From sequence record MK774614.2: a stretch of 64,000 bases of DNA; one strand, given 5' to 3'. Below are positions 12,495 to 22,616 of the stretch, piece after piece. The position numbers were made by a program, and so were the translations under genes. The notes under the pieces are model-generated. The model searched no databases. It saw nothing but the letters and a program-made list of their open reading frames with translations, and was not told where the DNA came from. Numbering within the stretch: the first letter of the stretch is position 1; each line of letters begins with the position of its first letter.

Positions 12495-13532
12495 ATGTTT
12501 AATACAGGAATAGAGTACACAGCCATTAAGCCGTTATCAGAAATCTTAAATATTGATTATGATAAAACCACGGTCACAGAACGTGCTAAAATGCGTTATG
12601 ATTACATAATGTCTGAAATAGCAAAAGGAAGTGACGATGTTTTCTGGGACTACTTAGAATATATTCCAGGTGTGCTTGGAAGAAACGGTTCTAAAATACC
12701 TCCATGGAGAACTGAACAGACATTAATAAACATCTATGGTGAAGCTGGAACAAACATCAAAGGAAACTTATGGACTTATAAGGGAACCGTTGATGCAAGA
12801 GGCTATGTTAAAATTGTTGTTAGGTCACCGGCATTATCTTTTAGTATCTCAGCCCACCGTGCCGCTGCCTCTACTTTTATTCCTATGGAGACACTTGATC
12901 AAACCTTACAGGTTAATCACATTGATGCCATCAAAACAAATAATTATTTCAAGAACTTTGAATGGGTAACGCATCAAGAAAACTCCCAACATGCTGTCAG
13001 TATGGGTATTGACGTCGGTATCAACAATAAGAACACGAAACCGATCCTAGGAACGTGGATTATTCCTGATGAGGATTACGGAACAAGTTTCGTGTTAGTC
13101 GGGAAAACCGAGATCTTTGCCGCCGGGTTAAATGCACCTAGTATCCATCAAGCGGCGGATAATCCCACCATAGTCAGATATGGGTGTATTTGGAAATACG
13201 TCCCCAAGGAAGACGTCCCATTGGTACATAATGGGGTTCCAGAGACATTAACCGACAAGATAAAGGATCTTGCTTATACAAACATGAATACGGAACCTGT
13301 AAAAGCAACGATTAACGTAGAGGGGAAACATAAAGGTGAGGAATTTTGTGTTTACGGAGCCTCTAGATTAAAGGAACTTGGATTTTTAGGTCCGCATATT
13401 TTAAATGTGGTGAAAGGAAAGTTGAAAACTCATGGTGGTTGCAAGTGGATAAAGGTGTCCAGAGAAGAAGCAATGCTTTTGCAACGTGACCCAACTCCAG
13501 AACAACTCAAATTTTTATTTCCAAATAAATAA
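12495..13532 (+). mobile_element. Second free-standing HNH homing endonuclease gene, paralog of 9127
   Basis: SAHRAAASTF...QVNHIDAIKTNNYFKNFEWVTHQEN; same tandem C-terminal repeats ending GC.W..V; start could be GTG 12462. Confidence 0.88.
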
Positions 13533-14882: not shown

Positions 14883-15753
14883 GCAGTTTCACCTGTTGAA
14901 GGAGTTGTTGTGCTTTATAAACCAGTTGGATGTCTTCGGAGAATTGTGAGACAGCAGCCATGAACTGGGTTTCAATTTGTTCATCAGTTAAGTTGGCAAT
15001 TAGCATCAACCCTAAGAGATCATTAAGGTAACTGACGGGGTTTTCTACTAACATCTTCCCAAGCTCATTAACAAAGAGCATGGTCAAGTTTTCAAGCTCG
15101 AGTCCCGGGGCGCCACCATTGACAATATGATGTTCTGCCAGTGTCTCTGTTAAAAACGGTTTATTGTTGATCATCCGTTTTTTGAGTGAGGGCTCCAAAT
15201 ACTCTTTGTCATCGGTACTCAGCACATTGAGTCCAACCAGAATCCCTTTGATGACATTAGGTGCAACGCCTTTGATCAAATAAGGGAATTGTTCACAGTC
15301 ATAACTGGGATCCATTTTACGGATCACCTCAATGAACCGTCCCTTGGAGTCGTACTCTTCGTCTTCTAAGATATCGACCAATCCTAAAACATCTTCGATC
15401 CCATCGACCATGTAAATCGTATTTAAAATGTGGGTCAAATCTTTAAGTGAATTGACGTCAACAAAATCCAGATCAATGATAATTCCCATAATCTGTAAAC
15501 AGTCAACGAGATTGTTGATCAACATTTTGCGCACATGCATGACTTTATCAGCTGTTTCCGTCCCTTCGTCAATTAAGATGTTGGTGACATCAATTCCCAT
15601 ATTGTTATCTGGGAAAGAGATGGAAATTAAGTTGTACGCATCGTTGAATTGTATAGCTGCCTGCTCAGAACACACCGAGGTAAAGTCTAACCACAATTCG
15701 CCTAAGTCATCTTGAGCATAATTGCCATGAGTAAGATCAATCATATCTAACAT
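14875..15753 (-). CDS. Conserved hypothetical protein co-transcribed with the vRNAP subunit, probably virion-associated
   Basis: 292-aa ORF, AAGGAA RBS, overlaps the vRNAP gene start. Confidence 0.6.
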   Translation of the reverse strand: MLDMIDLTHGNYAQDDLGELWLDFTSVCSEQAAIQFNDAYNLISISFPDNNMGIDVTNILIDEGTETADKVMHVRKMLINNLVDCLQIMGIIIDLDFVDVNSLKDLTHILNTIYMVDGIEDVLGLVDILEDEEYDSKGRFIEVIRKMDPSYDCEQFPYLIKGVAPNVIKGILVGLNVLSTDDKEYLEPSLKKRMINNKPFLTETLAEHHIVNGGAPGLELENLTMLFVNELGKMLVENPVSYLNDLLGLMLIANLTDEQIETQFMAAVSQFSEDIQLVYKAQQLLQQVKLHE

Positions 15754-15792
15754 CGTTCGTTCCTTTATTTATTCAAAAGGTGGAGTCATACA

Positions 15793-16467
15793 ATGTCCAA
15801 AAGAGCACAACTTAACGCCGCTAAAAGGCGTGCACTGCGTAGCCAAAACAGCGTACAAAAACGCAAACAAGCTCAACGTGAACAAGCCAGTTACAAACCG
15901 GTTCGTCAAACCAAATTTAACGCCCAGCTTGATCGTATTAAAGCAGCCCTTGACAAGCGAGAAGAGGGTGTCAAAGAACTGGCATCCTCCCTTGGGGGCG
16001 TCAAGACAGAAGATCTGAGCAAAATCAATACTGCTGAGCTGATCCAAAATACTCGCACCGCCATCGGTGATGTGTTCAAACTCTTTAGTTATGTTGCCTT
16101 GGGGCGTGCGCTTGCTAAACAAGGTAAGATCGAATATACCCCGAGTTGTGATATCCATGACATCGCTCGCTCTATGACCAATCTGGATCAACAATTTACC
16201 AAGCTTGATGTATTGGTGAAAGAAAACCCAGAAGAGTTCGTGATCACGGTCTTTGACATGGGGAGCGAAATGGAAACACGTGCTCACCAACTTTATACTG
16301 AGATCACAGCTCTGGAAGCACACGAACAGGCAATTGGCTCTGCCATTGACAATACTGCCAAAACCCTTTTGCTGGAACATCCTGAAATGACCATGGATCA
16401 AGCTCGGATCGAAGTTACCCAATCTGTTGCTTACGCCCTGCTCGAAGAGTCTACTGTCGCTATTTAA
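15793..16467 (+). CDS. Hypothetical helical protein with basic N-terminus
   Basis: 224-aa ORF, GGAG RBS. Confidence 0.75.
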   Translation: MSKRAQLNAAKRRALRSQNSVQKRKQAQREQASYKPVRQTKFNAQLDRIKAALDKREEGVKELASSLGGVKTEDLSKINTAELIQNTRTAIGDVFKLFSYVALGRALAKQGKIEYTPSCDIHDIARSMTNLDQQFTKLDVLVKENPEEFVITVFDMGSEMETRAHQLYTEITALEAHEQAIGSAIDNTAKTLLLEHPEMTMDQARIEVTQSVAYALLEESTVAI

Positions 16468-16482
16468 AAGGAAGTCTTTCAC

Positions 16483-18120
16483 ATGTCCGAACAAGAACAA
16501 CCAAACGAACAACCCATCCCAGAGTTTAAAGCAGTGCACAAAGGGGGCGGCTATAGCTCCCCTATTTTGAACACTGAAGATACCCCACTGGGCGAATACA
16601 CCACCCCGATCTTCTTGGGTTCTCTGGATAGTCAGCACAAAGCAATCTTTGAAACTGCGGTGGTCTTTGCCGAACTGCGCCAGATGCGCCAGGACAATGA
16701 AGCGGAGCGCGGTGTCTCTACACAGATGCTAAACTCGCTGGAAGTCAAATACAGCGAACTGTGCGAAAAACATTTCCCGGGAATTGATGAAAAAGAACTG
16801 GCGATTACACTTGCCAATTACTTTAACTTTATTCAACGCGGTGAACGTACACTTCGTCGTGACGAGAACCGGGATCTGCTTAACGCTGAGCGATTCAGTA
16901 ATGTCTTTGATCGTCCTGCTGGTCCCGCAGGCGTTATTGAAAAGACCGCGGTTAAAACAGTTAAAGATAAAGGCATTCGTGACCGGATGCGGCGCAGTGT
17001 CCTTAAAGCGATGGGTGCGAGCGATAGTATCACGATCACACTCCCTAACTCCCGCATTGTGCTACGCATTCCTGTTCCTACTCCGTGGGAGATGGCGTCG
17101 CTCTTTAACAAGATCTCCGCTGCACTTAACTACAACCAGTTTGGTGGTCGGATTCGGGTGTCTAGCCTCCATCTAGAACGCGCCATGATTACTCGCACCA
17201 TTGTAATGTGGGTGTTGGAACGTGCCAACTACTGGTCTGTTAAAGACATCTTGGAAGCACAAGAACTCCTTGAAGTGATTCAACGCGAAGATGCCGATCT
17301 GATTGCAACAGCTATCTTAGCAAGTGCCGCACCAAAAGGTCTGTCGTATCGTCTCCATTGCCTTGCAGATAAATGTAACTACGTAGAAGACAAACTGATT
17401 GATCCTGCCAACTTGGTGGTCTTCGATGACATTCGTTATCCACAAGTCTACATGGATCAACTGCTGGAAATGTTGAACACCGGTAAGAAGTTCACCAAGC
17501 AGGAACTCAAAGATACCCGTGTTCCTTATGTGGATGTAAACGGTGAGGTGCTGGATGATAAGATCATTGCAGTGGGTGGTGAAATCGAGTTTAAAATTGG
17601 CAGTCCTTATTTGTCCGATTACTTTACTTGTTTTGATCATGCCGCCAATCTCTTAAATAAAGAGATCCGTGATCTGGCTACTCAGTTCCCTAACGCGAAG
17701 GAGTTTGCCGAAAAGCGCAAAGAACTGATGTCCAGTATGCGGATGATCGATTACCTTCAGTATTTTGAATCGATGACTCTCAAAGCGGATCCGCTTAATG
17801 AAGAAGAGAAAGACGAAGTTATTTCTCGTTCAGAAAACCCGGGTGAATTTAACCAAGGTCTGATCGATATCTTTAATAACGATGAAGTCCTCTACGGTGA
17901 AGCATTGGTTAAAGTTCTGACCATTGTCCCCCGGATGTCTTATACCTTCGTTGGGATTGCTGATGACACTTGCCCTAAGTGCAAAGAAAAACATCCCCAT
18001 ACTGAAATCCGTAATGGGTTTACACCAATCGATCCTATCCTGAATTTTTTCGACCAGGCCCGGATGTTGATTATGGTACGGCGGGACATGGGAGTTTATC
18101 AAGAGGAAGTTCTTTCCTAA
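16483..18120 (+). CDS. Putative tail/baseplate assembly chaperone-like protein (candidate 'G')
   Basis: 545-aa ORF; C-terminal CPKC and PIDPILNFF followed by a slippery T6 run; function inferred. Confidence 0.5.
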   Translation: MSEQEQPNEQPIPEFKAVHKGGGYSSPILNTEDTPLGEYTTPIFLGSLDSQHKAIFETAVVFAELRQMRQDNEAERGVSTQMLNSLEVKYSELCEKHFPGIDEKELAITLANYFNFIQRGERTLRRDENRDLLNAERFSNVFDRPAGPAGVIEKTAVKTVKDKGIRDRMRRSVLKAMGASDSITITLPNSRIVLRIPVPTPWEMASLFNKISAALNYNQFGGRIRVSSLHLERAMITRTIVMWVLERANYWSVKDILEAQELLEVIQREDADLIATAILASAAPKGLSYRLHCLADKCNYVEDKLIDPANLVVFDDIRYPQVYMDQLLEMLNTGKKFTKQELKDTRVPYVDVNGEVLDDKIIAVGGEIEFKIGSPYLSDYFTCFDHAANLLNKEIRDLATQFPNAKEFAEKRKELMSSMRMIDYLQYFESMTLKADPLNEEEKDEVISRSENPGEFNQGLIDIFNNDEVLYGEALVKVLTIVPRMSYTFVGIADDTCPKCKEKHPHTEIRNGFTPIDPILNFFDQARMLIMVRRDMGVYQEEVLS

Positions 18121-18566
18121 CGCCAGCTGATTCACCAAACTTTGCAAAACGGTGGTTAGAAAGTGCGACCAAATTTCTATTTGGGGTTTATCGCAAGCAG
18201 AGTGTCTCCACGATGGAGACACTCCTTGCCGAGCATCGTGCTTACTGCCTGTCTTATGGATGGGTCAGTGAAAAGGAATCGATGGCTACTGCAATCGATT
18301 ACAACCACAAACGCCGTGATTTCTTTCACATCTTTTCTGCAAAGTCAATTGGTGAAACATTCGGGCGTAGAGAATATGATACGCTCATTCCATTGAAAGA
18401 TTACATGGATTCCCCTATGCACTTAATCGAAGATCTTCTGGAAGGGGTAGCAGAAGGTAAGCGCAAAGCCAAGATTGCGGCTGAGCAAGCGGTTAAGAAT
18501 AAGATGGGGAATTTAAGTCCCGAACAAATTGTTCAAAAACAGATAAATAAAGAGATGCAAAGATGA
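18045..18566 (+). CDS. -1 frame extension (candidate 'T') of the 545-aa gene; alternatively a 117-aa gene from ATG 18213
   Basis: Frame open 18015-18566; no ATG/GTG/TTG in frame before 18213; no clear RBS there. Confidence 0.6.
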   Translation, partial: FFRPGPDVDYGTAGHGSLSRGSSFLTPADSPNFAKRWLESATKFLFGVYRKQSVSTMETLLAEHRAYCLSYGWVSEKESMATAIDYNHKRRDFFHIFSAKSIGETFGRREYDTLIPLKDYMDSPMHLIEDLLEGVAEGKRKAKIAAEQAVKNKMGNLSPEQIVQKQINKEMQR

Positions 18567-19108
18567 AACCTTTGAAACAACCGATCGTTGAAACACGTCA
18601 AGACGTTATTGCTGAGCAGTCAGCAAAAGTCGAGTCTATGGACACCAGCACAAAAGTCCCTACTGAAAAAGTTCCGGTTACGCCTGCGACCATTTGGAAA
18701 AACGGGTTTAACCTGTTTGTTGATTTCCTCAAAGGCGATCACTTGAGTGGGGACTTGATTAAACGTCCTTTGTTCCAAGCTGAGTTTATGGACAGTATTC
18801 CACGGATTCTGGAACTGGATCAAAACCTCGCTCACGAAGTGCTGGATCACTGGTTGATCACGATTGCTGAAAACCGCCGGACCTTTGGACAGAATCAACT
18901 TTTTGTCCCTCTCTATGCGGTAGAGAAAGATAAAATGCGACCGATCAGTGAAATTGCGCGTTACAAAATGTTCCTGGTCTTTATGGTTATGTTGTCTGAT
19001 AATGCCCAAGTTAAATCGAAGTTTATTGCTAACTTCGATGTTGCTAAACTGGTGCATGAATTCTCAGGTAAAGCAGCTCAGACCCTCAATAATTATATCT
19101 ATCGCTAA
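18563..19108 (+). CDS. Hypothetical protein
   Basis: 181-aa ORF overlapping previous stop (ATGA). Confidence 0.75.
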   Translation: MKPLKQPIVETRQDVIAEQSAKVESMDTSTKVPTEKVPVTPATIWKNGFNLFVDFLKGDHLSGDLIKRPLFQAEFMDSIPRILELDQNLAHEVLDHWLITIAENRRTFGQNQLFVPLYAVEKDKMRPISEIARYKMFLVFMVMLSDNAQVKSKFIANFDVAKLVHEFSGKAAQTLNNYIYR

Positions 19109-19117
19109 GTCTATTTT

Positions 19118-19149
19118 CATTCTTTACCCACTGGTGTGGGTAAAGAATG
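19118..19149. terminator. 14-bp-stem hairpin
   Basis: CATTCTTTACCCAC-TGGT-GTGGGTAAAGAATG. Confidence 0.55.
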
Positions 19150-19164
19150 TTTTGCTACAATAGC

Positions 19165-19271
19165 TACTTTTATAAAACAAGGGAAATAACATGAATGTGA
19201 ATATTGATCAAATGGATCATGTTTTTGACACCATTGATGGGTTTGAATCTATTAGTAATAAAGATTTTAAA
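19165..19271 (+). repeat. 107-bp leader cassette, copy 1
   Basis: 26 nt of identical upstream sequence plus 27 codons; repeated at 21583-21689. Confidence 0.95.
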
Positions 19272-20195
19272 ACAGTAAATGCGAAATACACCCAGACTGT
19301 CCTTCGGCTCAATGGGTGTGATTTAGCGGTAATTGCAGGTCAGGAAGGTTTGGGAACTGCTATTAAGGAAGGTGCTAAGAAAGTACTGGACATGCTCTTG
19401 AATCTGATCAAGGCGGTTAAAGATTTCTTCTTTGGTAGTAAAGGCAAGAACAAAGAAGTTCAGATGCGGGAAGCCAGTAAACAAGCAAAACAAGTTTTGG
19501 TAGAAGTAAAGAAAGCACCTGCCCTGGAAGAGAAGGTTGCTAAAAACGCAGAAAAACTTCAACCCAGCATGACCAAGATCGCTAAAGCTGCAACACACGA
19601 AAAGATTGAATTGGTCTTTGGCCCTTACGTTAATTTCATGTCAGAGTACTTCGAGACAATGGCGGATGCAAAAACAGAAGGCTACCTTGTTGCCGCGCAA
19701 ACTGGCAAAGCGTCACTAAATAAATGGCGAACTGATAACTTGAAACTGCTGGCGGCCTTTAATACCCTGGCTAAATCATTTACCCATCGTTACAAAGATG
19801 AAGAAACAAAAGAAGTTGAAGCCTTCGCTGTAATTGAAAGTATCGAGACGGGTAATAAAGTTATTGCTGGAACCGAAGCGTTCCGGGATGTCGCAAAAGA
19901 CGGTCTTAAAAGTGTTAATGAAACACTTGAAGGTTACACCGCGTATTATGAAAGTTTGATTAAAGAAGGAGATAAAGCTGGGAACGCTGAGCAAGTATTG
20001 AAGTTTATTCAGTCACTTGGCAAAGTAGATACCAAAATGGCTAAACTCGTCAGTGAGTGCGATGAGTTTATTATTACTATAGCTGCCGCCATTGCTCGCC
20101 TGGGTACTCCTATTCTGGAAACAGAACCACAACTGAATAAAGTATTGAGTAATATTACCAGTACTGAACAGTTAGACGATTTCATGAACAGTTAA
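19191..20195 (+). CDS. Internal head protein paralog (phiKZ gp93-family-like)
   Basis: DGFES and AGQEG maturation-type motifs followed by an amphipathic helix ending KDFFFG. Confidence 0.7.
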   Translation: MNVNIDQMDHVFDTIDGFESISNKDFKTVNAKYTQTVLRLNGCDLAVIAGQEGLGTAIKEGAKKVLDMLLNLIKAVKDFFFGSKGKNKEVQMREASKQAKQVLVEVKKAPALEEKVAKNAEKLQPSMTKIAKAATHEKIELVFGPYVNFMSEYFETMADAKTEGYLVAAQTGKASLNKWRTDNLKLLAAFNTLAKSFTHRYKDEETKEVEAFAVIESIETGNKVIAGTEAFRDVAKDGLKSVNETLEGYTAYYESLIKEGDKAGNAEQVLKFIQSLGKVDTKMAKLVSECDEFIITIAAAIARLGTPILETEPQLNKVLSNITSTEQLDDFMNS

Positions 20196-20204
20196 CTTTG
20201 TAAA

Positions 20205-20238
20205 AGAGCCACCTAACCCAATTGGGTTAGGTGGCTCT
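20205..20238. terminator. Perfect 34-bp palindrome
   Basis: AGAGCCACCTAACCCAATTGGGTTAGGTGGCTCT. Confidence 0.65.
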
Positions 20239-20262
20239 AAAACATGTTGCCTATAATTTTTG

Positions 20263-20283
20263 AAACAGATATTATTATAATGT
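20263..20283 (+). promoter_or_regulatory. Putative early promoter
   Basis: AAACAGATATTATTATAATGT. Confidence 0.6.
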
Positions 20284-20316
20284 TAAACAACCTAATGTTT
20301 ATTTAAAGGAGTGGTT

Positions 20317-20895
20317 ATGAATTGCGAAACAAAAGAGATGTTTATTCGTTTTGCTAACGGCGCTTTCACAGAGTGTAAAGCAATCCCCGCTGGGGTGTTG
20401 TTGGTTTGGGATAAAAATATTAATCCGTTAGAAGTATCGGGCGTATCATCAAAAGAATCGGAAGAACGATTCAGTCATTTTGCTCGCGTTGACGTTCATG
20501 GAAAACGTAAATCCAAACTGGGCGTTTTTACCTCTGATACTCAAGATAAGAACTACCTTGTTATTGCTCCAATACAGTTTTTTAAGGTTGCCTTAGATAT
20601 GTTGGACCCGACGTTAGACCCCAAAACCTTGTGGAATAACGAAACGCCATCTGATGGTTTTAGCACGCTGTTTGACGCACTCAGTTACGTTCGAGAGAAC
20701 TTTACTCCAACTGGCAAAATCGGCGGCAAAGAAGATCCCGAACCCGCGGAACCTGTTGTAATCAAATCTTGGTCGCTGCACAAAGAGAATTACACCAATC
20801 AAGAAGTGCAAGAGATCCTCAGTGAGTTTAAAGAAGAACTGGTTGAAACCACCAATCAGTTAATGAACCGCCTTATTAACAGACTTAGCAAATAA
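20317..20895 (+). CDS. Hypothetical early protein
   Basis: ATG 20317 after AAGGAG; downstream of the early motif. Confidence 0.75.
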   Translation: MNCETKEMFIRFANGAFTECKAIPAGVLLVWDKNINPLEVSGVSSKESEERFSHFARVDVHGKRKSKLGVFTSDTQDKNYLVIAPIQFFKVALDMLDPTLDPKTLWNNETPSDGFSTLFDALSYVRENFTPTGKIGGKEDPEPAEPVVIKSWSLHKENYTNQEVQEILSEFKEELVETTNQLMNRLINRLSK

Positions 20896-21582: not shown

Positions 21583-21689
21583 TACTTTTATAAAACAAGG
21601 GAAATAACATGAATGTAAATATTGATCAAATGGATCATGTTTTTGACACCATTGACGGCTTTGAGTCGATTAGTAATAAAGATTTTAAA
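21583..21689 (+). repeat. 107-bp leader cassette, copy 2
   Basis: Differs from copy 1 at 5 synonymous third positions only. Confidence 0.95.
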
Positions 21690-22616
21690 TCCCCTAATAG
21701 TGTTTATGCACAAACCGTACTGAAACTCAATGGTGCTGATTTGGGCGTCATCTCAGGTCAAGAAGGGTTTGGAACTGCTGTTAAGGCGGGGGCTAAGAAA
21801 GTTTACGAAATGATCATGAATTTCTTACGCGCAGTTAAGGAATTCTTCTTTGGTACCCGCTCTGGTAAAAGTGACGCCAGTCTTTCAAAAGTGATTGCCC
21901 AAATTCCCAGATCAACGTTTGTAATCAAGGCCGCTCCAAATCATAAACTAGAAAAGCTATTGGAAGAAGCAAACGCGTCCAATGCAAAACTGGAAAGCAT
22001 TCTTTCTGGGAGATACGGGAGTGTGCGTTTTGCAAGCTACGATGAGTTCTTGGATGTGATGACTGAGAACACACAAGCCTCCCTCAGAAAACTTGATCTG
22101 ACTGGGCTTTCTATCACTAACCTTGGTGATACCGAAGGTTACAAAACAGACAAACTTCGGGAAGAGCTTGAAAAACTGATCAAAATGATCGCGAATCACG
22201 AAAGTGGGAAAGGACAGGATGGTTCCATAATTGCTCTTTTCAAGGCAGTCGAAGACGGGCAAGCCATGGCAAACACCCTCGGTTCTGTTCGAACCGAAGC
22301 AAAGAAATTGATTGTCACCATGACCGCAGATCTTGAAATCGCTACTCAAGCTTTGAATCGCAATAAGCAGTTTGTTGACAAAGATGAAAACCTCACCAAA
22401 CAACATGAACGTCTCGAAGCTTACACCATTCAGCTTGGTAAATCCATGGCTAAACTCGTCAAACTCAGCAAAGATTGTGAGAACTATATTTTAAACATTG
22501 CAGATGTTTGTGTCAAAATGGAAGCGAAGGTTTCTGGCAATGATAGTAACGGTAAACAAATTCTTGCCGAATTTGATAAACTTATGTTAGACGATGGTGA
22601 CGTAAGCTTTAAGTAA
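21609..22616 (+). CDS. Internal head protein paralog (phiKZ gp93-family-like)
   Basis: First 27 aa identical to the 19191 protein; SGQEG motif then helix ending KEFFFG. Confidence 0.7.
   Translation: MNVNIDQMDHVFDTIDGFESISNKDFKSPNSVYAQTVLKLNGADLGVISGQEGFGTAVKAGAKKVYEMIMNFLRAVKEFFFGTRSGKSDASLSKVIAQIPRSTFVIKAAPNHKLEKLLEEANASNAKLESILSGRYGSVRFASYDEFLDVMTENTQASLRKLDLTGLSITNLGDTEGYKTDKLREELEKLIKMIANHESGKGQDGSIIALFKAVEDGQAMANTLGSVRTEAKKLIVTMTADLEIATQALNRNKQFVDKDENLTKQHERLEAYTIQLGKSMAKLVKLSKDCENYILNIADVCVKMEAKVSGNDSNGKQILAEFDKLMLDDGDVSFK

Follow-up and report, generated by a model that had tools for sequence, protein, structure and literature searches.

How many genes lie between positions 16483 and 18566 of the DNA analysed here: two that are read separately, or one that is read in two ways? 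The stretch examined (hereafter "the window") is 64 kb long and 100% identical to Aeromonas phage CF8 (MK774614.2; 238,150 bp; genus Chaoshanvirus), a phiKZ-like jumbo phage. Two genes for hypothetical proteins are annotated at this place on the plus strand: CF8_0084 (16483-18120; 545 amino acids [aa]; phrog_4585) and CF8_0085 (18213-18566; 117 aa; phrog_19747). The upstream gene is Chimalliviridae core gene cg18, listed as a "hypothetical protein" and equivalent to RAY gp267 and Goslar gp081; the downstream open reading frame (ORF) is outside the core-gene list of the same study (Prichard et al. 2023, PMC10299810). A model's sequence-only reading of the window had proposed that the two are joined by a programmed -1 frameshift. 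In the work described below, the slippery signal, the two frames, their conservation and the coding signature of the -1 frame are direct observations. The answer that we consider probable, on comparative grounds, is that a conserved programmed -1 ribosomal frameshift produces a minor isoform of ~694 aa beside the 545-aa protein, and remote similarity points to a role of these products as an assembly factor.

Candidate slip site and -1 frame in CF8

Positions 18045-18050 are six T and position 18051 is a C. The zero-frame codons at this place are AAT TTT TTC (Asn-Phe-Phe, residues 521-523), and the candidate slippery heptamer T_TTT_TTC (18045-18051, plus strand) covers Phe522-Phe523 in the X_XXY_YYZ register. 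The zero-frame stop codon (18118-18120) comes 66 nucleotides (nt) after the heptamer. The -1 frame opens at 18015, following a TAA, and remains open until the stop codon at 18564-18566, a stop-to-stop stretch (18015-18566, plus strand) whose first ATG, GTG or TTG is found at 18213. The heptamer, its register and the open -1 frame with its late first start codon had been pointed out in the sequence-only reading and were borne out, and the peptide that it described as a bridge between the two frames is the true -1-frame translation.

When the CF8 segment was shuffled, the -1 frame remained without stop codons in only 3.3% of cases. The window contains approximately 6-fold fewer T6 or A6 runs than shuffles predict (25 found, compared with 142 expected), which suggests that homopolymer runs are selected against throughout the genome. 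The heptamer at 18045-18051 is regarded as an intact signal, not as a lesion.

The ATG at 18213 had been said to lack a clear Shine-Dalgarno (SD) sequence. Its SD pairing is indeed among the weakest of 15 neighbouring genes, with -2.7 kcal/mol compared with a median of about -5.3 kcal/mol. These SD scores, and the scan upstream of the heptamer presented below, depend on an assumed 9-nt anti-SD string. The ATG is also enclosed in a perfect 11-bp hairpin (18200-18224, plus strand).

Under the proposed decoding, most ribosomes would stay in the zero frame until 18118-18120 and release the 545-aa protein, whose last 22 residues are predicted to be the end of a C-terminal helix. A fraction of the ribosomes would slip back one base with two Phe-tRNAs on T_TTT_TTC and would then run in the -1 frame, through the annotated gap and CF8_0085, to the stop codon at 18564-18566. 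Simple arithmetic yields ~694 aa for the trans-frame product: 523 zero-frame codons plus a 171-residue extension counted from the heptamer. The long isoform would keep the first ~523 residues, and its terminal helix would be swapped for a flexible linker of ~50 residues and a helical domain of ~120 residues. CF8_0085 would thus represent for the most part, perhaps exclusively, the latter half of a recoded gene.

Conservation and coding signature among phiKZ-like phages

Conservation was examined at 32 loci: 28 annotated phage genomes (CF8 and 27 further ones) and 4 uncultivated viral genomes from IMG/VR. The Aeromonas phages compared were ZPAH34, AerS_266, AhC3_1, pAEv1810 and D3, and the Shewanella phages were SXP01 and FishSpeaker. 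The other genomes compared were pEt-SU, Kc263, N1M2, Survivor, Yubaba, AH04, OBP, RisingSun, EL, pTD1 and Miami; PhiPA3, KTN4 (species phiKZ), 201phi2-1, SPN3US, RAY and RSL2; and Bacillus phage AgentSmith, PCH45 and Halocynthia phage JM-2012. The host range of the compared phages includes Aeromonas, Pseudomonas, Erwinia, Vibrio, Salmonella, Ralstonia and Bacillus. When the CF8 protein was used as tblastn query, the upstream protein was detected in 70 phage records, and a distant family member used as query raised the number to 250. A scan of IMG/VR for close relatives gave no match with the single CF8 protein and 6 loci with an alignment (A1).

The downstream ORF is shifted by -1 with respect to the upstream gene in 32/32 loci, and in all of them this frame extends without a stop codon to the 5' side of an in-register N_TTT_TTN. 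This motif lies on a homologous, conserved Phe-Phe pair, which is Phe-Leu in two of the loci, and the first position of the heptamer is T in 31/32 loci. The distance from the heptamer to the downstream stop codon is 149-180 codons at every locus, while sequence identity of the extension among relatives is 14-67%. Frames other than -1 contain 1-8 stop codons over the same segments; in six IMG/VR loci that were checked, the +1 frame closes after 6 codons. Conservation of the heptamer and of the open -1 frame in homologous gene pairs, which had been put forward as a check of the frameshift, and whose absence would have refuted it, is thus found throughout, and it supports the existence of a ~694-aa fusion beside the 545-aa protein.

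A conserved start codon for the downstream ORF was not found at any of these loci. Annotated starts are scattered over alignment columns 59-141 (approximately 80 columns), the annotated downstream protein ranges from 69 to 182 aa, and the distance between the two genes as annotated varies between -136 and +236 nt. The ATG of CF8 aligns with a TTG in ZPAH34 and AerS_266, and the ATG of these two phages aligns with a CTG in CF8. Several loci have more than 60 codons of conserved open -1 frame without any start codon.

Public annotation of the downstream ORF is inconsistent between genomes. In RAY, the annotated start of gp266 (locus L024, 2924-3472) lies 5' of the heptamer, and the gene overlaps the upstream gene by 136 nt. 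In D3, gene D3_0074 (locus L007, 4261-4470) has only 69 aa and follows a "gap" of 236 nt. The downstream ORF of 201phi2-1 is gp135 (locus L022, 3026-3487). None of the 28 public records annotates a joined coding sequence, and all give two genes.

The annotated "intergenic gap" (18121-18212 in CF8, plus strand) contains no stop codon in the -1 frame at any locus, and it aligns as protein across genera. Substitutions were counted on codons placed along the protein alignment of the -1 frame. In the gap, relatives differ at -1-frame codon positions 1, 2 and 3 in 84/87/145 cases; the figures are 2/3/17 for N1M2 and Yubaba, and 4/6/13 for pEt-SU and Survivor. In four taxon-independent pairs, the excess at the third position gives a chi-square of ~20 with 2 degrees of freedom. 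The pattern is close to that of the annotated downstream gene, where the differences are 217/155/424. This comparison of sequences indicates that the gap is translated in the -1 frame.

A different pattern is found in the overlap between the heptamer and the zero-frame stop codon. There the differences (48/25/24) are concentrated on the zero-frame third position, and differences are fewer per codon than in either of the other two regions, as dual coding would predict. Residues E541, L544 and S545 of the zero-frame tail are invariant, which suggests that the C-terminus of the short form also matters. Hence, both products look selected.

Codon choice at the site was also examined. TTT serves as the first Phe codon in 28/28 annotated loci, and the preceding codon ends in T in 27/28. 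The choice of TTT is kept even where this triplet makes up only 10-13% of the Phe codons in the genome, and other Phe-Phe pairs in the same genes have TTC first in 12/12 cases. The T run is 6 nt long in CF8 and in 14 further loci, and reaches 7-8 nt in more distant members.

Ribosomal shift, polymerase slippage or two genes

The sequence-only reading had also suggested a weak pseudoknot starting 7 nt downstream of the heptamer, and this part of the proposal was not supported. The 84 nt 3' of the CF8 heptamer fold worse than shuffles (z +1.5), and no signal of 3' structure was detected over 28 loci (mean folding z of -0.06). The RNAalifold consensus of 15 relatives amounts to -2 kcal/mol, with no covariation or compensatory pair, and Rfam gave no match at the site. 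On the other side, the window 5' of the heptamer is less SD-like than random positions inside genes, and no SD-like stimulator was found in it.

Many well-studied -1 sites carry a stimulator, which is a common but not obligatory trait of the class. For instance, the -1 sites of dnaX and of insertion sequence (IS) elements are flanked by an upstream SD-like sequence and/or a downstream hairpin, and the shifted product of dnaX is the shorter one. The cg18 site resembles these sites in its tandem-slippage heptamer, placed in a bacterial translation system, and in having two products per gene. It differs from them in the lack of a detected stimulator, and from dnaX in that the shifted product would be longer. 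Given that neither a stimulatory RNA structure nor an upstream SD-like element was found, the shift, if ribosomal, probably requires nothing but the slippery run and is probably inefficient.

Hairpins of another kind were found further downstream. In many relatives, perfect hairpins of 9-15 bp lie inside the gap that appears to be translated, 100-165 nt 3' of the heptamer (L002 5601-5633; L003 5603-5635; L005 4130-4155; L006 4060-4092; L004 5188-5208). The stems differ compensatorily between CF8 and ZPAH34, and a short T run follows the hairpin in N1M2 and ZPAH34. The gap hairpin is too distant from the site to be a classical stimulator. For the CF8 hairpin at 18200-18224, the possibility of an intrinsic terminator between two genes was discarded: it has no T tail, it is not scored as a terminator, and its flanks evolve as coding sequence. 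A tentative interpretation is that it may block internal initiation, or may have a part in the processing or stability of the mRNA.

Several observations weigh against a programmed ribosomal shift and have to be set beside the evidence described above. Neither a 3' structure nor a 5' SD-like stimulator was found at the site. The heptamer of PhiPA3 opens with G, not T. The strong hairpins inside the supposed coding gap look like intergenic elements. Some start codon is present in the -1 ORF of CF8 and of several relatives, and an independent, shorter product is possible. Runs of 7-8 T in several relatives would suit slippage by a polymerase as well. Lastly, all the support for the long isoform is comparative, and the product itself is predicted.

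Part of these observations can be accommodated by transcriptional slippage, which is the main rival and which we consider unlikely. The phage or host RNA polymerase would stutter on the T run and give rise to minority mRNAs with continuous frames, and the same long isoform would be made. Runs of 7-8 T, found in many relatives, fit this possibility, and so does the failure to detect a ribosomal stimulator in either the 3' folds or the 5' SD-like scan. Furthermore, according to annotation, phiKZ-like phages transcribe with unusual multisubunit polymerases; we know of no characterisation of their slippage behaviour. The run is, however, only 6 T long in CF8 and in 14 further loci, and 6 T is short for efficient polymerase slippage. 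A polymerase does not need a register either, and the run is always in the ribosomal register over two Phe codons (with the full heptamer in 31/32 loci). The latter argument is weakened by the fact that the conserved Phe-Phe pair also fixes the register. Sequence alone cannot decide between both types of slippage; we infer that ribosomes, rather than RNA polymerase, slip at this site.

A second explanation, which seems to us somewhat less probable still, is that two ordinary genes are involved. The 545-aa protein and a small protein would be made separately from their own starts (ATG 18213 in CF8), and the open -1 frame and the T run would be by-products of protein conservation. All 28 public records are annotated in this manner, an ATG does exist at 18213, the gap hairpins resemble intergenic elements, and Phe-Phe is conserved as protein sequence. 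Yet start positions are not conserved, and the stretches of more than 60 codons without a start codon would have to be explained. In addition, the gap evolves as coding sequence, the -1 relation is kept in 32/32 loci despite indels, codon choice at the site goes against genomic bias, and the ATG at 18213 has a weak SD sequence and lies inside a hairpin. Translation of the downstream ORF solely in an independent manner fits poorly with the coding gap and with the lack of a conserved start, although some internal initiation may coexist with the frameshift.

Finally, homopolymer runs are error-prone on some sequencing platforms, but a sequencing error or a recent inactivating frameshift that split one long gene is extremely improbable, because the same layout recurs in 32 genomes that were obtained independently, in different laboratories and years and from different hosts, and the zero-frame tail after the site is conserved under purifying selection; a single-ORF version is also absent among the 150 family representatives listed.

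The protein family, its surroundings and its biology

Record notes and the cg18 core table identify the upstream gene as phiKZ gp77, PhiPA3 gp074, 201phi2-1 gp136 and EL gp47. A profile search of the family returned 617 clusters; among the 150 listed, the proteins end soon after the Phe-Phe region, and no natural in-frame fusion with a C-terminal extension is found. Four cysteines are invariant across the family (C293, C298, C497 and C500), and the motif suggests, from sequence, a metal-binding site. The two pairs, Cys293/Cys298 (17359-17376) and Cys497/Cys500 (17971-17982), are ~200 residues apart, and the second is located ~22 residues before the slip site. Several upstream genes carry the label "ZipA-like cell division protein", which probably derives from a Q/E/P-rich N-terminus.

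The AlphaFold model of the 545-aa protein has a predicted local distance difference test (pLDDT) score of 81 and a predicted template-modelling (pTM) score of 0.81, and it places Phe-Phe at the start of the last helix (518-544). The model of the extension is of low confidence (pLDDT 50) and consists of a disordered stretch of ~50 residues followed by helices. A Foldseek search of the PDB with the 545-aa model gave no match (best E 0.39), and sequence searches of the PDB with the family profile and with the downstream protein returned noise only. When BFVD, a collection of predicted viral protein structures, was searched with Foldseek, the matches beyond the protein's own family were proteins of ~250 aa named "baseplate hub assembly protein, bacteriophage T4-like", "hub subunit" and "hub assembly chaperone". 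Matches named T4-like hub had a probability of 0.8-1.0, E values of 1e-3 to 1e-1 and template-modelling (TM) scores on the target of 0.4-0.57, in a comparison of predicted with predicted structures.

Sequence profiles point in the same direction. Pfam PF12322 (T4_baseplate) is weakly matched by 3/64 distant members (best E 1.2e-5), and PHROG 150 ("baseplate hub") by 2/64, also weakly (best 2e-4); these weak hub-profile matches cover the second Cys pair. The score of P0150 against PF12322 is 16.4 bits, below the cut-off of 24.5. A few public records name relatives "putative baseplate hub assembly protein". We take the PF12322, PHROG 150 and BFVD hub-assembly entries to be the T4 gp26/gp51 group, and the comparison with T4 hub chaperones that had been recommended at the outset proved apt. 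The predicted fold of approximately the C-terminal two thirds of the cg18 protein resembles the predicted folds of proteins named as T4-like hub assembly proteins (TM on target 0.5-0.57). Unlike these proteins, which have ~210-285 aa, members of the cg18 family have 450-650 aa and an added N-terminal region. The 545-aa protein is probably better placed with the T4-type hub assembly proteins, as a remote relative of larger size. Against this assignment, the link to the T4 hub comes from sub-threshold profile hits and from matches between predicted folds, and the CF8 protein itself matches no Pfam family.

A different comparison was implicit in the description of the site as "G/GT tail-chaperone style". 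The tail assembly chaperones gpG/gpGT of lambda and gpE/gpE+E' of P2 are made with a -1 frameshift that is conserved among long-tailed phages. The cg18 arrangement is like theirs in that the heptamer lies a few dozen nt before the upstream stop codon and the second ORF, in the -1 frame, has no dependable start. It is also like theirs in that the isoforms would share the N-terminal body and differ at the C-terminus, in the conservation of the arrangement and not of the sequence, and in that the cg18 product is a probable non-virion assembly factor. However, the cg18 protein is several times larger (545 aa), it has a four-Cys motif, and its gene is not located between tube and tape-measure genes. 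No match to the lambda G/GT-type tail-assembly-chaperone family was found in Pfam, PHROGs, PDB sequences, PDB folds or BFVD. Hence, the likeness to G/GT stands for the C-terminally extended isoform that a -1 shift would produce; membership in the family, in view of size, position, sequence and fold, does not.

In the 201phi2-1 record, neighbours gp138 and gp139 are flagged as found in virions by mass spectrometry, and gp136 and gp135 carry no such flag. From the remote similarities described above we infer a function in assembly: most likely, the two isoforms would be a non-virion assembly factor for the tail or the baseplate hub, with an isoform ratio fixed by the shift, as in the lambda G/GT logic.

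The surroundings of the gene were also examined. Annotation of CF8 and its relatives places next to the 545-aa gene a virion RNA-polymerase subunit, a virion protein, small hypothetical proteins and a DNA polymerase. No tube or tape-measure genes adjoin it, in agreement with a caveat of the sequence-only reading. Downstream, CF8_0086 (18563-19108, plus strand; 181 aa; phrog_14374) comes third in the unit, and its SD sequence is weak (-2.9 kcal/mol). Its ATG overlaps the stop codon of the -1 ORF (ATGA, 18563-18566), and this overlap suggests that the third gene is translationally coupled to whatever translates the -1 ORF. Directly 3' of it, a hairpin that resembles a terminator, with 14 bp in its stem and a T tail (19118-19149, plus strand), closes the three-gene unit; it is the strongest site of this kind within 15500-20500.

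Other loci in the window deserve mention. The genes at 19191-20195 and 21609-22616 are paralogues that share 35% identity across 309 aa. The two proteins are almost the same over their first ~27 residues, and an identical 21-nt sequence precedes each start. One of the paralogues shows faint matches to phiKZ-like internal head proteins (PF12699, phrog_5750), and the N-terminal segment common to the pair may thus serve for targeting or as a propeptide. CF8 also harbours a putative HNH endonuclease gene, CF8_0080 (12495-13532), which ZPAH34 and AerS_266 lack at the syntenic position; in AerS_266, an HNH homing endonuclease is encoded elsewhere in the same block. The HNH genes of CF8 and AerS_266 are probably mobile homing-endonuclease insertions.

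Full-text searches, which did not cover subscription journals, yielded no report of a frameshift in cg18 or phiKZ gp77. Mentions of "gp77" and "gp136" in several papers were examined and discarded, as they follow the numbering of other phages and do not refer to cg18. The -1 site of cg18 is thus probably a new, unannotated recoding signal that is present family-wide. With less confidence than we have in the frameshift itself, we lean towards a broader view: that every nucleus-forming phiKZ-like jumbo phage, together with relatives that reach Bacillus phages, carries in cg18 an ancient, stimulator-free -1 site from which two isoforms of a baseplate-hub or tail assembly factor are made. The downstream "hypothetical gene" of hundreds of genomes would then not be independent. 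The site would also be the first case of recoding described in this family, and a jumbo-phage counterpart of G/GT in an unrelated protein that resembles T4 hub assembly proteins.

If this interpretation is correct, an uncharacterised core gene of the Chimalliviridae acquires a decoding mechanism and a plausible role, and the annotation of an ORF that is called at 69-182 aa in different genomes is corrected. A natural, conserved -1 site without a recognisable stimulator would be useful to learn what sets low-level frameshifting in bacteria. The logic of tail assembly with two isoforms produced by frameshifting would also be extended to a new phage lineage and to a new protein family.

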